From: Calcarisporiella thermophila CBS 279.70
Taxonomy: Eukaryota > Fungi > Calcarisporiellomycota
DNA length: 64,000 bases
Direction: 5' to 3'
Assembly (NCBI RefSeq): GCF_041956535.1
Contig: NW_027192197.1
Span: 383,829-447,828, forward strand
Below the pieces are notes generated by a model, which had not been told where the DNA came from, made no database searches, and saw only the letters and a program-made list of their open reading frames with translations. This document shows positions 15,482-60,373 of the stretch, piece after piece. Made by a program: the position numbers and the translations under genes. Positions within the stretch are counted from its first letter, which is position 1, and each line of letters starts with the position of its first letter.

Positions 15482-16057
15482 CTATAGAGCTTTAGTTGGT
15501 TTGGCTCCTGCACTAATGGATGCGCCAGGTTTCCCGAGAGCGGCAACACCACCACCAGCACCGCCAATGCCAATAGCACCGCCGGCATCGCCAGTACCAC
15601 CAGTACCACCAGTACCACCAGCACCACCAGCACCAGCTGGAGGAGTAGCAGCAACTGCGCCACCACCAAGGGTAACAGTAGGTGCTGTAACCGTTCGGGT
15701 AACCGTTCTTCTGCGAGTTGGTGTAGATGCGGGAGTAATAGTCTGTGTTTCGGTGACAAACTCCTCTACTGGCTTTACTTCTCCACCTCCTGAGCCGGAA
15801 CCTTGACCTCCGCCTGCGCCTGCGCCAGCGCCAGCTCCCGCGCCTCCGCCCGAGCCATATCCATATGCGCCATCAGTGGGAGGAGGTGGTGGCGGTGGAG
15901 GTGGAGGCGGTGGGGGTGGGGGGGGTGGAGGCTGTCCACCTCCTAAACCAAGTAATTGTGCAATCAAACCTATAGTACGCTTTTCGCGAACAGGCACCGC
16001 TACAGTGGCGATAATGAGTGCCAGGATTGTTGGAAAGAGAAGAGCAAATATTTTCAT
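15482..16057 (-). CDS. Secreted Pro/Gly-rich KR-processed protein, paralogue 1 (191 aa)
   Basis: Intronless ORF: signal peptide, VREKR|TIGLIAQLLG, long polyproline, YGYG, GAGAGA run, TPTRRRTVTRTVT, Gly/Ala-rich tail. Confidence 0.85.
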   Translation of the reverse strand: MKIFALLFPTILALIIATVAVPVREKRTIGLIAQLLGLGGGQPPPPPPPPPPPPPPPPPPTDGAYGYGSGGGAGAGAGAGAGGGQGSGSGGGEVKPVEEFVTETQTITPASTPTRRRTVTRTVTAPTVTLGGGAVAATPPAGAGGAGGTGGTGGTGDAGGAIGIGGAGGGVAALGKPGASISAGAKPTKAL

Positions 16058-16202
16058 CTTGAAGAAGCTGGCGGTGAGAAATTAAGGGTTGCGTGTAAGA
16101 GAGATGTAAGGAACTGCTTAATGGATACTCCCGTAATTGCCCTTCACAAATAGATTATTGTAGATGGAAAACACCGAGATGAAATGAGGTAAAATTTGTA
16201 CG

Positions 16203-16280
16203 TATATATATGTCTGTGCCCGGATCATCTTTTGCGAAGACCATATTTGGAGCAACCCTAAGGTTTTTGGCATTACCCTA
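16203..16280 (-). promoter_or_regulatory. Putative promoter of paralogue 1: TATA-like element plus two ACCCTA motifs 20 bp apart
   Basis: TATATATA at 16203-16210; ACCCTA at 16255 and 16275 (+ strand reading). Confidence 0.45.
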
Positions 16281-17014
16281 GTTTTTTAGCAACTCAGCCC
16301 TCGTTTGATTGCTAGTTTAACACTACTGACGGACGCTGTTGTCACTGGTGTCATATTTTGATCGATTTGGAAATGCCGATCCGAGTTCAAGCTAATGTAG
16401 TTGAAATTATAAGATGTAAAAAATATCAAAGATCCTTTTGTTTACTCTATCGTGATTTCTCAATGACCAACATTAAATTTGAATGAAGTTTTGCTTTCTT
16501 TGAAGAGATGATGAAGTTGCTCTGATAGTGAATTAAACCTAATAGTTGAACCTGGTCATTTCAGTTAGCTATCCACTATGATGTCAATTAAGTTGCTGTT
16601 TACGCCCCCCGTAATAATGAGGTTAGGTAAGTACGACTATTACGTTGAATTCCCTAAATGATATCGATAGATTCACTTGCGCCAAATGTCTTTATCCTGG
16701 TGGCATGTAGCTTCTAGTACTAATACATACCATCTCTGAATTTTATCGTTTTACCCAATAAAGAAATACTATCTGATATCGGGTTATACACCTGGATCCC
16801 TCAAGAGGGGCCATTTTTTAAAGTAGAATGGTGAAACCAAGGTATTTTGTATTATAAACGAAGGTTTCAAATAAAAATAATATGTATTTAATTAGGTGTA
16901 GAAATAAATCCCTTAAAATAAACATGAACTAATAAAGTACAATATAACGCAAAAGTATCAATTAGTTGGTTTAATTAACTTCTGTTTTTCTCGCGTTGCG
17001 TTGAACAAAAGTGC

Positions 17015-17350
17015 CTAGGAAGAAAGCGTAGTATATACCGTGATTGTTCTTCTGATGGTAGGTGTTTTTGGTGGCTGGATAACTACAGTATCCGTGATTA
17101 CTACTTCCGATGGGCCACCACCATAAGGAGGTCCATAAGGAGGTCCAACTGGAGGTCCAACTGGAGGTCCAACTGGAGGCCCAACTGGGGGTCCAACTGG
17201 AGGAGGTTGTGGAGGAGGAGCACCACCACCCATGAAGCCCTGTAGAAGTTGTGCTAACAGGCCAATAGTGCGTTTCTCACGAGAAGGTGCTGCTTGGGAC
17301 GTAGCGATGAGGACAGCAGCTGTGGAGAGAAAGAGAAAAGATATTTTCAT
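17015..17350 (-). CDS. Secreted Pro/Gly-rich KR-processed protein, paralogue 2 (111 aa)
   Basis: MKISFLFLSTAAVLIATSQAAPSREKR|TIGLLAQLLQGFMGGG, (VGPP)x5-YGPP-YGGG, TPTIRRTITVYTTL. ATG 17350 chosen by alignment with the paralogues. Confidence 0.85.
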   Translation of the reverse strand: MKISFLFLSTAAVLIATSQAAPSREKRTIGLLAQLLQGFMGGGAPPPQPPPVGPPVGPPVGPPVGPPVGPPYGPPYGGGPSEVVITDTVVIQPPKTPTIRRTITVYTTLSS

Positions 17351-17453
17351 TTTGAATGAATGCAACGAAGATAAAAGCGATGCTCAGTGTATGAGAGAAA
17401 AGAAAGGATCAAGGAGAAAAAAATTAAACAGGTTAGATAACTCTGCGTTATCC

Positions 17454-17546
17454 TTTTATACACTTACTCTACCGCCTACTACCAAGCTATCTCAAGCGAC
17501 CCTTACACCTTTTAGTGTACCCTTGTTTCTTATAAGTAAAACCCTA
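17454..17546 (-). promoter_or_regulatory. Putative promoter of paralogue 2: TATAAAA plus three ACCCT(T/A) motifs
   Basis: TATAAAA (minus strand) at 17454-17460; ACCCTT at 17499 and 17519; ACCCTA at 17541. Confidence 0.5.
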
Positions 17547-17897
17547 GCTTTGTTTGTTTGGAGTTCTATTTTCGCCGTACAACCAGGTATTTTATACACA
17601 GTTTATTTGTTATACTCTGATTATCTCTAGTGTTCCGCCGGGAATAATAGATATAAACAGATCGAACTTGAAATTTGCCACTATTTGTGAAATATTTTTA
17701 TTAAATTCCCATGTATCCTTGTCAATATAGGAATTAAATTAATGTTTAACAAATTTAGATTTCCTTTTCGTTTATTGGGTAATACAGGGTAGGGTAGAAC
17801 TTGTCGACAACCATCTATAAAACTGTATATATGTTTTCATTATACTCGTCGAAAGAGAACTCGTACGATCTAGCGCTGTATGCTGCAAAGCTATAAG

Positions 17898-18938
17898 TTA
17901 TTTTTCGATGCATCGCGGCTCCTGAGTTGTGCTCAATAGCGTACGCCAATAGTCGTCAAATTTAAACTCATAATCTAGTTTTCCACCGAAATCTGCTTCT
18001 AGTTGTTCAGCCGGGATGTAGTGAAGGAGATTTGCCCAATCTCCTTTCTCTTGGTTTGGCTGGACATTATTCTGTGTCTTTAGATCTACAAAGCGAATCT
18101 TACTTCTAGTAACCGGGTCAATAAACGGAGATATAAGTTTCCAGAAAGTCCAAAAGAACCATGGGGCTAAGGATGTGATATGAAATATTGTTTACTAGAG
18201 CTGATCCTTTTTTTACGCTTAAAACTTACTATTGACTAGGAAAGCTCTCCCAAGTCGCTCGGGATAATGATTCCCAAGGACCGTCAGAAATTCTTTAGCT
18301 ATTCCGAGACCAGGGTTTGTGCGGGTCGAAGATCCCGCAAAGTCTACAACAATTACCATCTTTTCGACATTCTCAGGCATCAGCCGTATGGCTCTCTCAA
18401 GCAAAAACACAACATTGCGAATATGACGCCGAGATGGCTTAGTATTCTCATTCCTCGGCTTCATGTATATTACTGGACTACCTTGGCTATCGAAACCATT
18501 GAGGTAGATTTTGCCCGTGTAGCACTAATTAAAACGGTAATTCATTTCAGTAAAAATCATTAGTAATGAGAATGTAATATGGAAGACTACTTCTTCTTCA
18601 ATTTCCTGTGGATCGATCAAATGTGGTCCGTAGGAGCGTCGCCATTTGAGTGTTTCTTCAATCCTCTCTCGTGCGTCGGAGTAATTCCATTTGCAAGCCC
18701 GCAAATACCTTAATAGACATGCATCACTGCACCAGGAAATCTCTGAAGTGCGCACTTTATCATCAGAAGAAAAAATTGAACTCGATTCCAGAAAATCTTC
18801 TCGTAGTCTCTCTAAAATTTTTTTTTTATCAGAATCAATTGCGGGAGGGGGGACATTAGTAATGTCAGCTGGGGGGACAAGTTGAGGAATTGTAGTTGGA
18901 AGAGACGAGGATGTTTGAGAACGAGCCGAAGGAGCCAT
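17898..18938 (-). CDS. PDR16: CRAL-TRIO/Sec14-like lipid transfer protein (Pdr16/Sfh3-like)
   Basis: DACLLRYLRACKWN..ETLKWRR, GKIYLNGFD..PVIYMKP, VLGNHYPERLGRAFLVN, PWFFWTFWKLISPFIDPVTRSKI, EQLEADFGG; stop TAA at 17898-17900. Confidence 0.88.
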
Positions 18939-19730
18939 TGAAATAGTACGGCGATTAAAAGGGAACACAGAAGAATTGAAATATAAAAGATAAAATGACA
19001 CGATGAACGTGCGATGACAACAAAGGGTGAAGTAACGGTTGTTCATATATCGGGTGTGTCATTGTTTTTCTTAACCAATAAATAAAATCTCGATTTATAT
19101 TGTGTGGCTGAGCAGATTCAGAGAGAAGAGAATCATCATATCAAACTGTCATTTTCGTTTATACTCTATAATTGTTTAATCTATATATTAATTTTAATCA
19201 ATATTTTTCGGATAATTTTACGGCCATACAGTATATAACTTATCTCTTTTTCAACTCTTTCATGTTCCATTTTAAAAAATAAAGTCGTGGTATTCTCTTA
19301 TTAATAATATGTATTATGATCTATAGGTTTCCAATACCACTTTTATTTGACCCATAACGGAACAGTTCAAGCAGTTTGGTGCATAACGATCGTCAATTAT
19401 AAATAACTGTCTAGAGGTTGGTGGAAAAAGAATATTGAACCATTCCACACGGTTTTGCATACTGTAAGGAAAATAAGTTCTAATTGGAATACACGAATTT
19501 TGTAATTTGCGAGATTATATTAGAAAGTATCACAAACAATTGGAGAAGCACTTTGGAGCAAAGCTCATTGATATACCGTGATAGTATTATTAATTAATTA
19601 GTTGATTCTTATAATTTATTAGTATTTCTTATACACTAAGTAACTAGGGCACATACAAAATAAAGCTGCTATCCTCCTAATGCACGAGAAAAATAGCGCT
19701 TTTAACTTAAAAGGACCGTTGATCTGACGT

Positions 19731-20012
19731 TTACATGCCGAGAGTTGTGTAAACAGTAACGTGCCTAGTGACAACTGGTCGGTCGGGATAAGGGTTGGGA
19801 TTATAAGGGTCAGGAGGATAAGGCTTAGGAGGATAAGGATCGACCGGAGGGGGAGGAGGAGGAGGCGGAGGAGGAGGAGGGGGTGGATAGATTCCACCGC
19901 CGAGCAAGCTCAAGAGCAAGCCAAGGGTACGCTTTTCATGATGCAGCGGTTCGGCTTGAGAAGTGGCGGCAAGGAAAAGAGCAGTGGTAAGGAAAAGCCC
20001 GGTGATCCTCAT
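19731..20012 (-). CDS. Secreted Pro-rich KR-processed protein, paralogue 3 (93 aa)
   Basis: Signal peptide ending SQA, HHEKR|TLGLLLSLLGGG, polyproline, PYPP/PYNP repeats, VVTRHVTVYTTL; TATAAAA at 20127-20133 (minus strand). Confidence 0.85.
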   Translation of the reverse strand: MRITGLFLTTALFLAATSQAEPLHHEKRTLGLLLSLLGGGIYPPPPPPPPPPPPPPVDPYPPKPYPPDPYNPNPYPDRPVVTRHVTVYTTLGM

Positions 20013-21152
20013 TATAGTTTAAAGTAATCGAAAGGATTGTAGTTGGGTAGGAATGAGCGTGGGATTAGAGAGAAAAAATTATTGTGGAGTGGTGGTGGAC
20101 TGCAGAGTTGCTGAAAATCTGCATTCTTTTATACTTTTCTCTTCACATACTCTGAAACAGCTCTTCTAGTCTCCATTAATTTGATTTCTTCAGAATCTAA
20201 TCTTGGTTTTTGTTTTACAGTTGGTCTTTGCCCCTTAATTATTTTTTTGGCAATTTCCCGCTGAGACCAAGAGGTGTTTCCGAGAAACTCGACAGCTGTT
20301 CAATCACTATAGTGGTTGGATTCAAAGTAGATCCGATCTGGCAATTTGCCACTCCGATAATTCGGTCAGTGCGGGAAGTCCGCTTGAGTAATCATTCGTG
20401 TTTATCTACATTTAAGTAAGAGGAAGAAACATAATTTGCCTAATTATTCAAGATGGAGTTGCCAAACGCGAAGGTATTGTTCTAACGTAAGTAAAAATCA
20501 GTAGTTTTAGTGACTATATTTTATATATTTTCCAGTGAGAAGGGCGACTATTCAACTTTAAACTAGATGCAGCGCAAAAAAGGTTTTGATATTGACAGAA
20601 AAAAAACAAAGCGTGGTCAATGAGAAATGGACCCTTGCGGCAATTTAAGAGAGCCCAGCAAAACGCCTCTAATTAGAAAACTCTGAGACAGTAAATTGGT
20701 TTAAGCGTTTCAGTGTGCGCAAAGTTACTCACGGTCTCAAGCATGAACCAATGCACTGTTTATGGTAATTTTATTCCTACAAAGACCGAAGACTATGCCT
20801 AATGCTCAGTGCTAAAGGGTGTATACGAATATAGACAATTAAATCATTCGTATTCGTAATGTATATGCATATCGAATGAAATGATTTATAATTTCTAGAG
20901 TTTTACTACTAATCATTTAAGTTCCTAATCCTTTTCCCGAGTATCCTAAAGCCTCCTGCTACCGGATTTACATTTTACTTCTCCACACCATTACTTATTA
21001 AAACAGAATAAAAATTTATTTAATGATTTAGTATTGCTTTCGACTATAATAGCTATGGACATGGGATATAATGAAGAGGGAATGCCTCTTCGCATAAATT
21101 TAGTGCGTCGTGAATGTTTCTTATCAGTCGCGCTAGAAAACTTAAGCTACGT

Positions 21153-21431
21153 TCAGAGAGCCGTAATTGTAACAGTAACGCGTCTGGTGACAGGTCCTCC
21201 TCCTCCTCCATATCCGCCGTATCCGTAGCCGGGTCCAGGACCGACATCAATGGGAGGTTGAACTGGTATTGGCTGCGGTGGAGGAGGTGGAGGAGGTGGC
21301 GGAGGTTGACCCCCCATAAATCCTGAAAGAAATGGAAGGAGCAATTCAAGAGTTCGTTTTTGACGGGCCGGGGCGGCTTGAGATACGGTAAGAAGAGCGA
21401 AAGTGGAAAGCAAAAGAACAAGAGCTTTCAT
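21153..21431 (-). CDS. Secreted Pro/Gly-rich KR-processed protein, paralogue 4 (92 aa)
   Basis: Signal peptide ending SQA, ARQKR|TLELLLPFLSGFMGG, polyproline, GYGYGGYGGG, PVTRRVTVTITAL; TATAAAA at 21525-21531 (minus strand). Confidence 0.85.
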   Translation of the reverse strand: MKALVLLLSTFALLTVSQAAPARQKRTLELLLPFLSGFMGGQPPPPPPPPPPQPIPVQPPIDVGPGPGYGYGGYGGGGGPVTRRVTVTITAL

Positions 21432-22900
21432 TTCGAATTGATTTCTGCTTAATAAGCCAAACTGATCTGGTTAGCGAAAAAAATTCAATAAAGTGATAAT
21501 TGGTAAACGCGCCAAGTACTGTCTTTTTATATCCTATTTGCCGTAACAGACAATCCCTTTTTTTTCAACGATGTATTACAAAAAAAGCGCTTTGCTTTAT
21601 TCAATACCCGGGGTTTTACATCCCTTGCGTAATTCTATGCGAGGCAAATTGATCATCCATCTTCATGATTAAATAGAGAGTGTTCTAGTTATGATCATGG
21701 ATGGAGGTGTTATGTGATATTATAGGTTAGGATCTTTCTAGTAGCAGTTTCAATCTTCAAAACATATCTCACCTTTGCCACTAAACTAACCTGGGAATTG
21801 CAAATAAGCCCCTGTAACTGAATAGCCATAGTGAAATTTTAAAATAACAATATATTTGAAACTTTTCATGTTAATACTTAATTGATTACTGTTATTGTTA
21901 AAAGTCGTTTATTACAGATTGCACAAGCATTGTACAATGGAGTAAAAAAGTAGGTCGCAATTGTGCACTTTTAAGGTCCCGAAGAATGGGCACGGCTATT
22001 ACAGTTTATTTTTATTTCCACTTGAGATCGACCAACGCTGAACCCTAGAGCTAGAAATAACGAAAGACTTAATTTGACTTTGTTTGTTTGTAAATTTTTG
22101 GGGATTTTCATTTATCTAGGGGCTGATATGAGCAAGAATTTTGTTTATACTCTTCAGTGATCTACATGAGAAGCAATACTGAAAATTTTCTTTAGTATGC
22201 TATTATATACCATCAGCTATCTCCGCTTATGAAAATACGAAAATAAACGTTGTAAAATATCATAATTTTCTTTTTATACAAAACGTGTTAGATCCATGAA
22301 AAGGATATTTAGGGGGAACATGCGGAAAAGTACCCTATGTTAAATATTTATACTTTTATTGGAAAAAGGGTTAAATACCACATTAACTGAAAGCTCTTTA
22401 AGTTTAAGTCAGGGATATACATAAAGTGTTTATTTCGAATTAATGTATTCAATATCCCTTTTGAATTATAAATTTTTTCTCACATATTTAGTTTGTTGGT
22501 TTATAACTTAGGAGTGGCATAGTACATTTTCTCACAGTTATTATCATATTAAAGTAATATTCTCAGGTGATCAAGCTAAAAAATTTAGGGGTGGGAAACT
22601 ACCTACATGATTATCCATTTGTCCCAGCGTTAGCATATCGAACACCTGTATATCTATTGTGTATATTGTCGTGAGTATATCAGTTTCGATTTTTGCATAA
22701 TCATATCTGGATTGTTCGAAGCCTAGGAGAAGCATCTCAGTATCCGTCAATAGTTATACGAAAACCCCTGGGTATCCAGACAACACAGGAAAAAAATAAT
22801 CAAACACATGGAACTAGTTTGTATTAAAATTTTGATTAAATAATTTATTGGAGATTTTACATGGTTTACAGAATAGTAATTAGCTAAAGCGTTTTCGAAG

Positions 22901-52668: not shown

Positions 52669-54060
52669 ATGGCAAGCAGATACGAAGAGAACATTGTCAA
52701 GCATAAGAACTCGCTCATTAAAGCGTTGGAAAGCAAAGAGGATTCGGTAATTTGCTCACCCTTGATGTTCTGCCTGCATCCATCCTCGTTTCTCAGCGAT
52801 TCCTCCCTAATCCTATAATTTGCTTTTCATTACCCCCCTTCTATTACAGAAATGTTTGGATCTGTTGGCTAGATTACAGGACATTAAGGCAACTGAAGAT
52901 TTATTACGGGTAATCTTTAACACCTCTTCGCAGTTTCTTGGTTCTCCTCCTCTCCACTCCCTCCTCCCTCTGCTTACTGATTTCTGTTCCGATAGAAAAC
53001 GGACATTGGGAAATTTTTGGGTAAACTTCGTAGCCACTCGAATGCAGACATTGCGGCCAAGGCCAAGGATGTGGTGCGGAAATGGAAAGAGGATATAAAG
53101 AAAAATGACAAATCGGACGAGCAACTGAAGGAGGGAAAGAAGGAGGAGGTTAATGGTGAGAAAAAAAATCGACCATCCAATGAATCGGAGGCGACAGGTG
53201 AGCCCTCTAAGTCCCTCTCACCCCCCACCCCCACCAACACTAATCAATCATATGAATGCTGATGGAACTCTCTTGGTAATTGAAAAGGGAAACCCAAGCT
53301 AAACACAGAGCCTCTTGTGAGAAGGGACAGCACTCCTTCCACTCCAAACTCGGTGAGCACTCCAGGCACACCTTCAGAGGTGCGCACAATGGCGTCCGAT
53401 GGGATTATTTCAAACTCTACCGACGACACTAGCCGAAACAAGTCGATTGAGATGTTGTATAACGCGATGGCATGGGACAGCAACGGAGGTAATTGGGGAC
53501 AATGCTCATTACAAGGGATTGCTCGAGATCAAGGAGGAGGGAGATTAATATTCTGTTTGCTACGACAGACTCGGATCTCATCTACTTAAGAGCTAAAACG
53601 ATCGAGAAGTTTACGTTTGGCGAGTTCAAGAGTGTGGATGCCAAGTACAAGGCGAAGATTCGCTCGCTCTTCCTGAACCTTAAGGCGAAGAACAACCCGG
53701 GGCTGCGAGAGGGCGTGGTGAGTGGAGAGATCTCCGTCGAGCGGTTCTGCTCCATGAGCGTCCAGGAAATGGCGTCGGAGGAGCAGAAACAGAAGGACCG
53801 GAAGATTCACTTGGACAATCTGTTCAAAGCGCGCGGGGCGGGACCAACGCAGGCAGAAACAGATATGTTCAAATGCGGACGGTGTAAACAACGCAAGTGC
53901 ACCTACTATCAAATGCAGACACGATCGGGTAAGCTTCGATGGAAAGGGTGGAACCCTTGACATGATTGACTTAAAATGTTTTATTTTTCTCTTAGCTGAT
54001 GAACCGATGACTACCTTTGTGACCTGCGTGAATTGTGGAAATAGGTGGAAATTCTGCTAG
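52669..54060 (+). CDS. DST1: Transcription elongation factor TFIIS
   Basis: TEDLLR|[50 protein letters not shown]|[21 protein letters not shown]. Confidence 0.97.
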
Positions 54061-54621
54061 ATATATACTATCTTTTTTTGGATTTATAATGTAATGTATA
54101 ACCAACGAACTTTTGCCTCCTTCCCCTCCCCTTTTCTTTTTTCACCTATCTTCCTCTTTACGGTCTAATACGTTTTCTCTCTGTGCTCTTCTCTGCGTTT
54201 TCCGTCTTAATTGCTTTCATCTTAATATTCGTCTTTTTTGTGGTAAAATAAAAAAAGATGCGTCTGAGTTGAATGAGCCTATCTAGAGTTCTATTAACGG
54301 AATAATGTAAGAGGCAGGCGTCTTGGGATGATACAACAGTAGATAACTATAAGATATTAAAGATGCGGTTATATAAATAGGGTGATCTGAAGAAATAAAT
54401 AAAGAAACAATCGAGGCTTGATTGAGACCATTGCAACTAGAGTACATGCAAAACATTAAATGGAAGAGGTGTAAAGAAAAAAAAAACAATGGTAGGGTGT
54501 AGTAGCAACAACGAAATAGGCGAAGGGAATCGGGCCGAACACATGTTCGACGAGAGAATATTATCAAGACGGGTAGGGGGGGGTAAAGGGGGGAGGTTGA
54601 AAGGGGTAAAATAAATTAAAT

Positions 54622-57002
54622 CTAGTAGTTGAGTTCAATGTTGCTCCTTCGCTTCCACTGCTTCTTCGATGAGAAGGTCATGGAAGAGGAGGCGGAGGGC
54701 GGGAGGGAGTGGAGGTGTGCATTCGGAAGGGGCGGGATATATTGCGGGGTGAGCTGGGGGGAGTTGGAGACGGACGAGCGTCTGGACGGGATCTCCGTCT
54801 CAGCTTCTTCGTTGGGGACGTCAGCCCAACTGGTGTGGTCGTCCCAGTCGCCAGCTTCGGATTGACGCCCCTCTTCGATTCGCACCACTTCATCCTCAGG
54901 GTATTCCTCGTATTCGTCATCGGCCCCGCGCCCGTAGGCTAGCCACAGCCAAAAGCGCCGCAACCTCCCCAGGCTCTTCGATTCCATGGCATCTCCGGCC
55001 TCGGAGGGCGGAGGAGTGATGGGAGGGGCATTTTGGCCCGCCATGCGCTTTAGTTTGCGGGCGATCCGCCGGGCTCTGCGCTGTGCCGCGGTGCCGAAAG
55101 GGCTGAGGAGGAGGGAAGAGACGTACACGCCGACCGCCACCCCGAGACACACCTGGATCATCTGGACCGCAAAGAGGAAGCCGTCCCCGGGGCTGGCGGA
55201 CACCCCGTACTTCTGGAAATCCTGCGAGGAGAACACGATTCCCAGAGTCCCTTGCACGCCCAGGGCCCCCGGGACCAGAAAGAGAATGCCCGTCAACATC
55301 ACCACCATGGCCTTGTCGTCATGCCTTAAGAATCGCGCGTAGACATTGCCCAGCAGCCCAACCACCAAGCCGCCGAACGCGGGCGAGACGGGCTTTCCCA
55401 GGTGCGGAGCGGTGTACACCACCGAGAGATAGCTGATGATGGAGATGATGGTCATTGCCGGGAACTGCCGGGGAGTCCCGCGCAGCCAGGTGCTGAGGGC
55501 AAGCGAGAAGAAGGGGACGAAGAAGAGATTCCACGGGAGGGGGATGGGGTCGACGTTCGGGCAGGCGTCCGAGTTCTCGGGGTGCAGGAGCTGCACGTAG
55601 AGCAACGAGCCCATGGCCAGAGCAAGGCCCAGCAATAGGGTGTAGAACATGCTGTAGATGAGGCGAGCGCTGCCCGACACGATGTATCGCGAGGTGAGCT
55701 CGAGCACGGCGGTCAGCACGGAGTACCCGGGCAGCAGGATGACCAGGGCCGACAGGGCGACGGCGTTGAAGCAGGAGTTGAAGGAGCTCACCGCGGCCTG
55801 CGAGACGAATCCGATGATGAGGGCGCAGAGGATGTCGGCGATTTTCTTGAAGTTGGCGTGGTGGTCGGCGGTTAGCTGGAAGACCCCGACCATCAAGCCC
55901 AGGGCAGCGTTGATCCCGACCTCTATCCACCCGGCCTTGAACCACAGCGGGCCCACGGTTGCGGAGGCGAGCATGTAGGAGAAGAGCACGACAAAGGGCG
56001 GGTATATGGGGGGCGAGTGAATGATGTGCTGAATGCGGGCGTTCGCCTCGCGCAGGCTCAGATCTCTCTCCAGGACGTCCCTCACGACATCGTGCACGGC
56101 CGACAGCTGATCAACAAATGCAGACACAAGAGAGGTTAGTCCCATGCGGGGGGGGGGGGGGCGAAGCAGGAGAGCCGGCTCGGCATTACCTTGCCCATGT
56201 CCAGGTCCTGGGTTTCTCGCACCAGATGGGTGTCCGAGGTGTGGGTATCGGGGTCCTGAAACGACACGATCATTAAATTGGGCAGGAAGAAGAAGTAGGC
56301 GGGAATGTCCAGCGCGGTCGCCAGCTGCTGCATGCTCTCTTCCAGGCGATGCGACGGGGCGCCGTAAGCGAGGAGGGCGCGGCACACCCGCATTAGAAAG
56401 GACTGTTTTTCCAAAATGTTCGCTATGGTGGTGGTGATGGCGAAGCGGTCCAGCGTCGACAGGGTCGGCAGGTTGAGCGCACTGTCGGCGGAGACGTGGG
56501 GAATAAGGCGCTTGGAGAACGCCTTGGGGCGGCGGGGGTGTAGCACGGGGGAATGCGGGGCGGACGAGGGGAAGGGGACGGGCGGGGGCCGTTTACTACG
56601 CTCGTCGCCGCCCATGCTGGTCCGCGACAGGACCTCCGAGAGCTGAGAGTACAACGTGCGCTTTCTCTCGGTCGCGCGCGACTTGTTTCGCCGCTTCATG
56701 CCCTCGAGCTTCAGCAGGTTGGAGAGCACACCCCCATGCTTGCTTGGCTTGCGCCGAAGGTCCGGCTGCGTGAAAGTGTCGACGATGTTGAAGGCGCGGC
56801 CGGTGAACTTGGGGGAGACATTCAGATCGGGCAGGTCACAGCTGCTGCGCGGGGAGCTAGTAGGAGAGGCGGGCGTCGACCATGCGCGGGCATGCGATTC
56901 GGGCTCCGTGACCTGAATGGTCACTTGATGCGACACGGGGTGGGGCGCCGAGCCGCTCGAGCTGCTGGAGTTGGATTCTTTGGGTTCCGGGTGCCCCTCC
57001 AT
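54622..57002 (-). CDS. PRM10: Pheromone-regulated membrane protein 10 / ThrE (DUF1212) family, 2 exons
   Basis: FLMRVCRALLAYGAPSHRLE, FFFLPNLMIVSF; intron 56107-56189 restores the frame into LSAVHDV..; LVILLPGY, ELTSRYIVSGSAR, GILFLVPG. Confidence 0.9.
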
Positions 57003-57649
57003 CGAGATGCTGCACAGGAGACGGCGAGTGGGGAATGGCGACAGGGAAAGGAACTAAGGACAATACGGGACTAGCAGGGAGGGGCTATGGGAAGCCGAAG
57101 AAGCAGGCGGAAGCACGGGGAAGAGGACGGAAGCTAGTGACAAAAAGAGTTTAAATAAGACAGAGCATGGAAAGCTTATGGAAGAGCAGCGGCCGAGTGT
57201 AAATAACAGTGTGTCAAGGCCTCATAAGCCGGGGCGAGAACCAATGCTTGGGCTCGGGCCCATTAGCAGATTTGCCCCCGAATGGAACGCCGCTCGGGGC
57301 CGCGACTCACACTGGAGACCGTGAGACTTTTGTCCCATCCTCCTCCCAGCTCTTGTGTAGCGCGACGAGATAAAAATATGCATGAGCATGGATGAGCCCC
57401 TAATGCAGGGTTCTCCTATTGGAAGCCGCGCCTGTTTGTTCATCCGCCCACGTTTTCCAACCTTCCCTGCCGGCCGGGGCCTGCCAATCACGGCCAGCTG
57501 TGCTTAGGCAATCCGACAATCGGCCGTCAATCCAGGCGCGGTGGTTTGGCCGTCGCCGCTATTCCCCCGCGCCCTCCTAACCTAGATCAAGCAAGATGCC
57601 AAGGAAAACTCTATTTGTTCGACTTACACTACATAGGAGTACTTTATTA

Positions 57650-60373
<2,724 letters not shown>

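Follow-up and report, generated by a model that had tools for sequence, protein, structure and literature searches.

The four genes of the window

A stretch of 64 kb from the genome of the thermophilic fungus Calcarisporiella thermophila (28 Mb; phylum Calcarisporiellomycota), corresponding to positions 383829-447828 of contig C7 and here called the window, contains four co-oriented open reading frames (ORFs) on the minus strand. They run uninterrupted from ATG to stop and encode proteins of 191, 111, 93 and 92 amino acids. All four are short members, multiplied by tandem duplication, of a family of eight genes that is restricted to this lineage. A first-pass annotation of this DNA had described them as intronless genes among intron-bearing neighbours, and this proved exact down to the coordinates of each gene; the genes around them each extend over more than one ORF and thus contain introns. 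Gene 2 starts at the ATG at 17350, and a longer ORF of 116 amino acids merely adds a TTG start. In the following list, the coordinates of all parts of the genes were checked by translation, and the middle blocks without coordinates come from the translations.

15482-16057, minus strand: gene 1, 191 amino acids
15977-15982, minus strand: KR codons of gene 1, in REKR
15932-15976, minus strand: head of gene 1, TIGLIAQLLGLGGGQ
15878-15931, minus strand: P18 tract of gene 1, then a Gly/Ala/Tyr block
15686-15715, minus strand: tail of gene 1, RRRTVTRTVT, then an extra Gly/Ala-rich C-terminal extension
17015-17350, minus strand: gene 2, 111 amino acids, leader with SQA
17270-17275, minus strand: KR of gene 2, in REKR
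17219-17269, minus strand: head of gene 2, TIGLLAQLLQGFMGGGA
Middle of gene 2, minus strand: (PPVG)n/PPYG block and VITDTVVIQPP strand
17024-17053, minus strand: tail of gene 2, RRTITVYTTL
19731-20012, minus strand: gene 3, 93 amino acids, leader with SQA
19929-19934, minus strand: KR of gene 3, in HEKR
19887-19928, minus strand: head of gene 3, TLGLLLSLLGGGIY
Middle of gene 3, minus strand: P14 tract, then (D/K/N)PYP repeats
19740-19766, minus strand: tail of gene 3, RHVTVYTTL
21153-21431, minus strand: gene 4, 92 amino acids, leader with SQA
21354-21359, minus strand: KR of gene 4, in RQKR
21306-21353, minus strand: head of gene 4, TLELLLPFLSGFMGGQ
Middle of gene 4, minus strand: P10 tract, then a GYGYGGYGGGGG block
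21156-21185, minus strand: tail of gene 4, RRVTVTITAL

The four proteins share one layout, and their alignment contains 26 invariant columns. A signal-peptide-like leader and a short propeptide ending in (E/Q)KR are followed by a hydrophobic head, next by a polyproline tract and a variable Tyr/Gly/Pro block, and then by a basic Thr/Val tail. Every element of the modular plan in the first-pass annotation, including the SQA of three leaders and the lack of cysteine, was recovered in the translations. By inspection, the leaders are organised like signal peptides, with n, h and c regions and a small residue at both -3 and -1, and they end in SQA in genes 2-4 and in TVA in gene 1. The (E/Q)KR motifs (REKR, REKR, HEKR and RQKR, respectively) lie within residues 23-28, with KR at residues 25-28 in all short members. 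The head, of 14-17 residues, follows the consensus T(I/L)(G/E)L(L/I)xx(L/F)L and then Gly, and the proline tract begins at residue 43-45 in every short member. Cysteine and tryptophan are both absent from the four window proteins, which in their mature form would carry a net charge of 0 to +2. In the six-frame translation of the window, a regular expression for the leader-KR-head plan matches genes 1-4 only.

A dispersed family of eight genes

Searching the genome itself with the family profile reveals at least eight loci, and the paralogous family with one modular plan proposed in the first-pass annotation is supported. The idea of a self-contained cluster "system" has to be given up, the window genes being only half of a dispersed family. 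The other four loci are the following.

Contig C6: p5, 80 amino acids, TLGLLALLLAKKHALL head, Pro/Tyr block, without Thr/Val tail
Contig C7, about 503437-504362, minus strand, ~100 kb from the window genes: p6 (L004), with leader, HEKR and TLGLLALLLAKKHALL head intact
Contig C5: p7 (P0004), 264 amino acids, one intron, head VWLLHEFLNGVF
Contig C3, 882372 onward, plus strand: p8 (L029), at least 499 amino acids, APVQKR followed by TFGLIGALIREKV (leader-head also given as APVQKR-TFGLIGALIREKVRFIERIF)

Residues K26, R27, T28, L31 and L36 are invariant in the family alignment. KR is conserved at all eight loci and is accompanied by Arg or His at P4 in seven of them. Three family members have the same leader, KR, head and Thr/Val strands but are long and mucin-like, with Ser/Thr/Asn repeats. 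P0004 carries QVTVTETRTRRPT, NPNGTP repeats, 16 N-glycosylation sequons, PTVTVTVT and TTTVYSCL, while p8 has TTTTVVITPTVTT and then at least eight GPSTSPTG(T/D) repeats. Ser and Thr make up 32-43 % of the two long paralogues measured (P0004 and the N-terminus of L029), which is typical of surface glycoproteins. In p6, two frame breaks occur within C-rich proline runs, after which the protein continues with RVTTVTVTG... and a region rich in Asn and ends in TQTVYASSYC; these breaks reflect either a pseudogene or homopolymer assembly errors. Both p5 and p6 have KK after the head, and genes 2 and 3, P0004 and the L004 ORF all have a TVY(T/S/A) motif near the C-terminus. Since head and Thr/Val strands are found in short Pro-rich as well as in long mucin-like forms, both are family characters. 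The four-gene cluster is the short-form half of a dispersed family, the long members of which look like mucin-type surface glycoproteins.

Genuine genes or fortuitous frames

Low-complexity DNA opens frames on both strands, and antisense and shifted ORFs of 54-122 amino acids indeed lie over the same DNA as the four genes, so that the choice of frame needs evidence. One line of evidence comes from an alignment of seven paralogues over their first 38 codons, which cover the non-repetitive leader, propeptide and head. Here the proportion of synonymous differences (pS) is 0.58-0.91, that is, saturated, and the proportion of non-synonymous differences (pN) is 0.26-0.45; the youngest pair, p5/p6, is the exception with a pS of 0.45 and a pN of 0.04. 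A saturated pS combined with a much lower pN indicates that the reading frame has been under purifying selection since old duplications. We therefore regard genes 1-4 as very probably real genes for leader-bearing, KR-containing disordered proteins.

It could be imagined that the frames are spurious or decaying products of low-complexity Pro/Gly DNA, without a function. Besides the competing antisense and shifted frames, this would agree with the frame breaks in p6 and with the lack of exact matches to the four window proteins in a collection of 15 billion proteins. Five neighbouring ORFs are likewise missing from that collection. Such an origin is nevertheless very improbable in view of the low pN in the non-repetitive leader and head, and of KR, T, L and L being invariant across eight loci. 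The proline tracts are encoded by a mixture of CCT, CCA, CCC and CCG, and hence are not pure DNA microsatellites. The frames also have flanking signals, with TATA boxes about 100 to 120 nucleotides before the ATG and AATAAA-like sequences after the stop codons. Furthermore, two paralogues are annotated in NCBI as "uncharacterized protein" (one of them as XP_069253589.1), and the protein of gene 1 occurs letter for letter in the ESM Atlas.

Properties of head, spacer and tail

The hydrophobic character attributed to the heads in the first-pass annotation is confirmed by a mean Eisenberg hydrophobicity of 0.56-0.73. They are not clearly amphipathic: the helical moment is modest (0.24-0.37) and exceeds that of 95 % of shuffled sequences in two of the four window heads, for which reason the description of the head as a strongly amphipathic peptide was rejected as a general statement. 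In an AlphaFold2 (AF2) model of the gene 2 protein, residues 3-18 and 25-39 are helical and the remainder is coil, with low confidence (mean predicted local distance difference test score, pLDDT, 58; predicted template modelling score, pTM, 0.18). The pLDDT of the ESM Atlas model of gene 1 is 0.45.

Pro, Gly and Ala together account for 59 %, 45 %, 46 % and 50 % of the proteins of genes 1-4, and for 43 % of p5. The middle blocks consist of elastin- or silk-like repeats, such as (PPVG)5, (GA)5, GPGPGYGYGGYGG and (D/K/N)PYPP, and contain 2-8 Tyr in Pro/Gly contexts. In each window protein the most beta-prone 7-mers are situated in the tail, which is preceded by RR or RRR in genes 1, 2 and 4 and by RH in gene 3. 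A beta-aggregating tail is plausible by analogy with the cross-beta segments of yeast adhesins. A structure prediction for a complex of four copies of the mature gene 4 protein scored 0.02, which speaks neither for nor against self-association.

Processing enzymes and hydrophobins in the genome

The (R/H)-x-K-R context of the conserved site is of the kexin/furin type, as defined by the specificities of Kex2 and furin. In a search of the genome, six loci match the kexin/furin P-domain PF01483 with 76-104 bits. One or two kexin-type genes is the usual count in fungi, and six exceeds that.

C5:1110032-1112179, two loci on opposite strands: PF01483
C7:757755-759762, two loci on opposite strands: PF01483
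C17:258385: PF01483
C19:558104: PF01483

The two back-to-back pairs suggest duplications of proprotein convertases. As the processing enzymes are thus present, cleavage at KR by kexin is plausible on sequence grounds, in agreement with the kexin-type site recognized in the first-pass annotation. A single N-terminal propeptide site is common among fungal secreted proteins.

The suggestion that the family could serve as a "hydrophobin substitute" fared less well. Class I hydrophobins with the canonical eight-Cys pattern are encoded in the genome of this non-Dikarya fungus (PF01185; 80, 30 and 25 bits), so that an absence of hydrophobins cannot be used as an argument for it, and its simplest rationale is lost. 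A few species outside Dikarya have already been reported to possess hydrophobins (bioRxiv 10.1101/2022.08.19.504535).

C25:89122-89352, plus strand: hydrophobin, PF01185, 80 bits
C18:373349-373579 and 374809-375051, minus strand: tandem pair of hydrophobins, PF01185

Promoter features

TATA-type promoters are typical of strongly regulated genes. A TATAAAA box lies 100-123 nucleotides upstream of the ATG in six of the eight family members, namely in three of the window genes and, at -102 to -123, in p5, p6 and p7. A second heptamer, TGGCAAA, is also found at similar distances in three window genes, and at -285/-286 in p5 and p6; its background in the window is 0.08 per 800 nucleotides of one strand.

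17454-17460, minus strand: TATAAAA box of gene 2, 110 nucleotides upstream of the ATG
20127-20133, minus strand: TATAAAA box of gene 3, at -121
21525-21531, minus strand: TATAAAA box of gene 4, at -100
16204-16210, minus strand: TATATAT only, gene 1, at -153
17674-17680, minus strand: TGGCAAA of gene 2, 330 nucleotides upstream of the ATG
20345-20351, minus strand: TGGCAAA of gene 3, at -339
21774-21780, minus strand: TGGCAAA of gene 4, at -349

TGGCAAA can be considered a candidate shared cis-element, and its conserved position, together with that of the TATA boxes, suggests that the genes may be co-regulated. Gene 1 and p7 have TGCCAAAAAC in common, at about -210. Copies of (A/T)AGGGT (that is, ACCCT(A/T)), spaced about 20 nucleotides apart, occur at 16204-16280 and 17504-17546 of the window, at -223 and -203 in gene 1 and at -196, -174 and -154 in gene 2. 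As a family promoter motif this element was rejected, because it was not found at comparable positions in the other six family promoters; it looks like a local feature of the promoters of genes 1 and 2 and not like family grammar.

Relatives and analogues

The judgement of the first-pass annotation that the proteins belong to no named family was upheld by every search made. Pfam gave no match for the four window proteins or for the long paralogues, and a profile search of the PDB returned chance polyproline matches only, with E above 0.06. The ESM Atlas yielded nothing usable for gene 2, and for gene 1 only feature scores up to 0.81 with template modelling (TM) scores up to 0.25. A homologue search with gene 2 led to two marginal Pro-repeat proteins that share no family architecture, and a search with the N-terminus of p8 found nothing. 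Among 1.84 billion representatives, a hidden Markov model (HMM) search recovered only the same-species paralogues P0003 and P0004 along with two polyproline false positives, and a family profile run against 5.8 billion proteins, with E up to 10, again recovered only P0003 and P0004. A scan of metagenome contigs with HEKRTLGLL-type patterns produced 302 pattern matches, none of which was confirmed. In these searches the family thus appears to be without detected relatives outside C. thermophila. To our knowledge, no close relative of this fungus has been sequenced and it is the only sequenced representative of its phylum; the orphan status is therefore real, yet expected.

In kind, the nearest analogue seems to be the arabinogalactan-protein-like (AGL) group of Glomeromycotina, in which clustered small Pro/Gly-rich disordered surface proteins are known to exist (PMC8786786); the present family would not be a member of it. 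As with AGL, the window proteins are small (<200 amino acids), predicted to be secreted, rich in Pro, Gly and Ala, built of short tandem repeats of the elastin or silk type, predicted to be fully disordered, and endowed with few or no N-glycan sites. Both groups are lineage-restricted and tightly clustered, five AGL genes occupying 16.6 kb and the four genes described here 6 kb. In contrast, AGL proteins have a C-terminal GPI (glycosylphosphatidylinositol) signal, and the window proteins, by inspection, end without a hydrophobic C-terminus (...AGAKPTKAL, ...TVYTTLSS, ...TVYTTLGM and ...VTVTITAL). Their Pro, Gly and Ala content of 45-59 % also falls short of that of most mature AGL proteins, which is above 70 %, the lowest reported value being 58 % (PMC8786786). 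No KR propeptide, hydrophobic head or Thr/Val tail is described for AGL proteins, and the window proteins have all three. No sequence relation to AGL was detected in the profile searches of 1.84 and 5.8 billion proteins, which included no direct comparison with AGL, and low-complexity proteins align poorly.

Single elements of the design are reminiscent of other systems. The Thr/Val/Ile-rich segment SNGIVIVATTRTV of Als5 is a proven cross-beta former in a fungal surface protein (PMC9306254), and the beta-branched runs of RRTITVYTTL, RRVTVTITAL and VITDTVVIQPP resemble it in being placed beside Arg in low-complexity proteins. Yeast adhesins, however, are large, GPI-anchored proteins with folded N-terminal ligand-binding domains, while the putative strand described here ends a disordered chain of 65-165 residues. 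Rep1 of Ustilago maydis and the Kex2-processed repeat proteins (KEPs) have, as predicted for the window proteins, a signal peptide, kexin processing at KR, a Cys-free secreted precursor and possibly a surface-active product (PMC6339444, PMC7329392). They contain several near-identical KR-bounded peptides, whereas here a single conserved KR follows a short propeptide and there are no repeated KR-bounded units. With Ece1/candidalysin of Candida albicans the family shares a KR directly before a hydrophobic Gly/Ile/Leu-rich segment, but candidalysin has KR at either end and is set free as a peptide of 31 residues, and the head described here would stay on the proline rod. Signal peptides, Pro runs forming polyproline II, Gly-Tyr blocks and a potentially cross-linking YGY also characterize plant extensins and the proline-rich and glycine-rich wall proteins; these belong to another kingdom, without homology, and unlike extensins the window proteins have no Ser-(Pro)3-5 motifs, their Pro runs being preceded by Q, A, Y and Q. 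Hydrophobins (PF01185/PF06766), finally, have eight Cys in a C-CC-C-C-CC-C pattern, in contrast to Cys-free window proteins without a Pfam match. On the basis of these comparisons, the family, an orphan one, may be assigned to the lineage-specific secreted low-complexity surface proteins of fungi. Fungal genomes commonly encode small secreted proteins of low complexity that are confined to one lineage, and in this respect the genes are ordinary.

A possible role at the cell surface

The explanation that we tentatively prefer, with chances somewhat below even, is that the family encodes secreted, Cys-free, intrinsically disordered proteins of the cell surface or wall matrix, for which we infer secretion, cleavage, localisation and self-association. 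A role at the surface or in the wall is the most economical reading because the long mucin-like paralogues share both end modules. According to this model, the signal peptide would be cut off after SQA or TVA, after which a Golgi kexin, cutting at the (R/H)x(K)R motif present throughout, would remove a propeptide of 7-9 residues and expose the mature N-terminus T(I/L)(G/E)L(L/I)xxLL as a short hydrophobic helix. The mature chain would then be a triblock, consisting of a hydrophobic helical head, a hydrated and extended Pro/Gly/Tyr spacer, and a beta-prone Thr/Val strand flanked by Arg. The spacer may combine a polyproline-II rod with an elastomer-like block, the Tyr residues of which would be available for oxidative cross-links. 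Through its two sticky ends the chain could attach to membranes, to the wall or to hydrophobic surfaces, and chains might pair with their neighbours by cross-beta interactions, as in yeast adhesins. The outcome would be a wall-associated network or coat.

Several observations weigh against this assignment to the surface or wall. In the four window translations there is no GPI signal, no PIR repeat (Q[IV]xDGQ[IVP]Q) and no other known wall-anchoring motif, and the short members have no N-glycosylation sequons and only 9-15 % Ser and Thr. Both structure models, that of gene 2 by AF2 and that of gene 1 in the Atlas, are of low confidence. The head comprises only 9-13 hydrophobic residues, with amphipathicity above that of shuffled sequences in two of four cases, and the tail is not obligatory, since p5 lacks it.

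A bolder form of the same idea is that these proteins constitute a previously unrecognised class of self-assembling "telechelic" fungal surface polymers, in which a kexin-unmasked helix and a Thr/Val cross-beta strand would link the spacers into a wall-bound film or gel, independently of hydrophobins. We consider this unlikely. If true, this material would influence surface hydrophobicity, adhesion or the heat-resistant mechanics of the wall in a fungus that is thermophilic and early-diverging. Equally unlikely in our view is a repellent-like, surface-active coat, with kexin-matured chains forming amyloid-like films at the air-water interface, on spores or on aerial hyphae and so making these surfaces hydrophobic, alongside or instead of hydrophobins, as Rep1 does in U. 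maydis. The hydrophobic head, the beta-prone tail, the KR maturation site with kexin genes to match, the lack of Cys and the TATA-type promoters would all suit such a coat. That canonical class I hydrophobins are encoded in the genome argues against it, with the reservation that U. maydis retains hydrophobin genes and yet depends on its repellents. Most of each chain, moreover, is a hydrophilic Pro/Gly spacer that is expected to stay hydrated, and there is a single conserved KR and no series of repeated released peptides.

Slightly less probable still is that the proteins are precursors of bioactive peptides, either with a hydrophobic N-terminal segment that attacks the membranes of competitors in a candidalysin-like manner, as an antimicrobial or cytolytic agent, or with a Thr/Val signal peptide freed by a second cut at the RR of the tail. 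C. thermophila lives in compost and self-heating substrates, which are rich in competitors; six kexin-like loci are at hand, a conserved hydrophobic segment follows KR directly, and RR or RRR ahead of the tail (genes 1, 2 and 4) and KK after the head (p5 and p6) could serve as further sites. In the four window proteins, however, no dibasic site follows the head, which means that kexin could not release it. At the tail, gene 3 has RH instead of RR, and in P0004 the RR is followed by Pro. The mature net charge is low for membrane-active peptides, the hydrophobic moment is modest, and the occurrence of the head in long mucin-like paralogues fits a structural role better. The first-pass annotation had also mentioned effectors, an idea in favour of which nothing emerged; we take C. 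thermophila to be a saprotroph, and the genes flanking the family members are of housekeeping types.

The cell surface of C. thermophila is nearly undescribed. A conserved family with head, spacer and tail and an invariant kexin site would offer a simple model for the anchoring of disordered secreted proteins without GPI or Cys, and for the wall matrices of early-diverging fungi and their function at high temperature. Work on protein materials might also take an interest in so short a triblock design without Cys.

Neighbouring genes

The cluster is interrupted by an intron-containing gene of the CRAL/TRIO type between genes 2 and 3, which is not a member of the family.

18219-19046, minus strand: CRAL/TRIO (Sec14-like) gene, with introns

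Further neighbours are a cytochrome-b5-reductase-like gene, a transporter of the major facilitator superfamily (MFS) and a Psg1-like match that is weak and does not reach the cutoff of Pfam. The flanking genes are of housekeeping types without a functional link to the family. A functional gene cluster with enzymes was considered and rejected, given this set of Sec14-like, b5-reductase-like, weak Psg1-like and MFS transporter genes.

Elsewhere in the window, positions 54001-60000 stand out by a GC content of 0.55-0.58, up from about 0.40, and are compositionally unlike the remaining window. This segment contains ORFs of the ThrE family and of the glutamine-amidotransferase type, with long uninterrupted frames of 587 and 401 amino acids.

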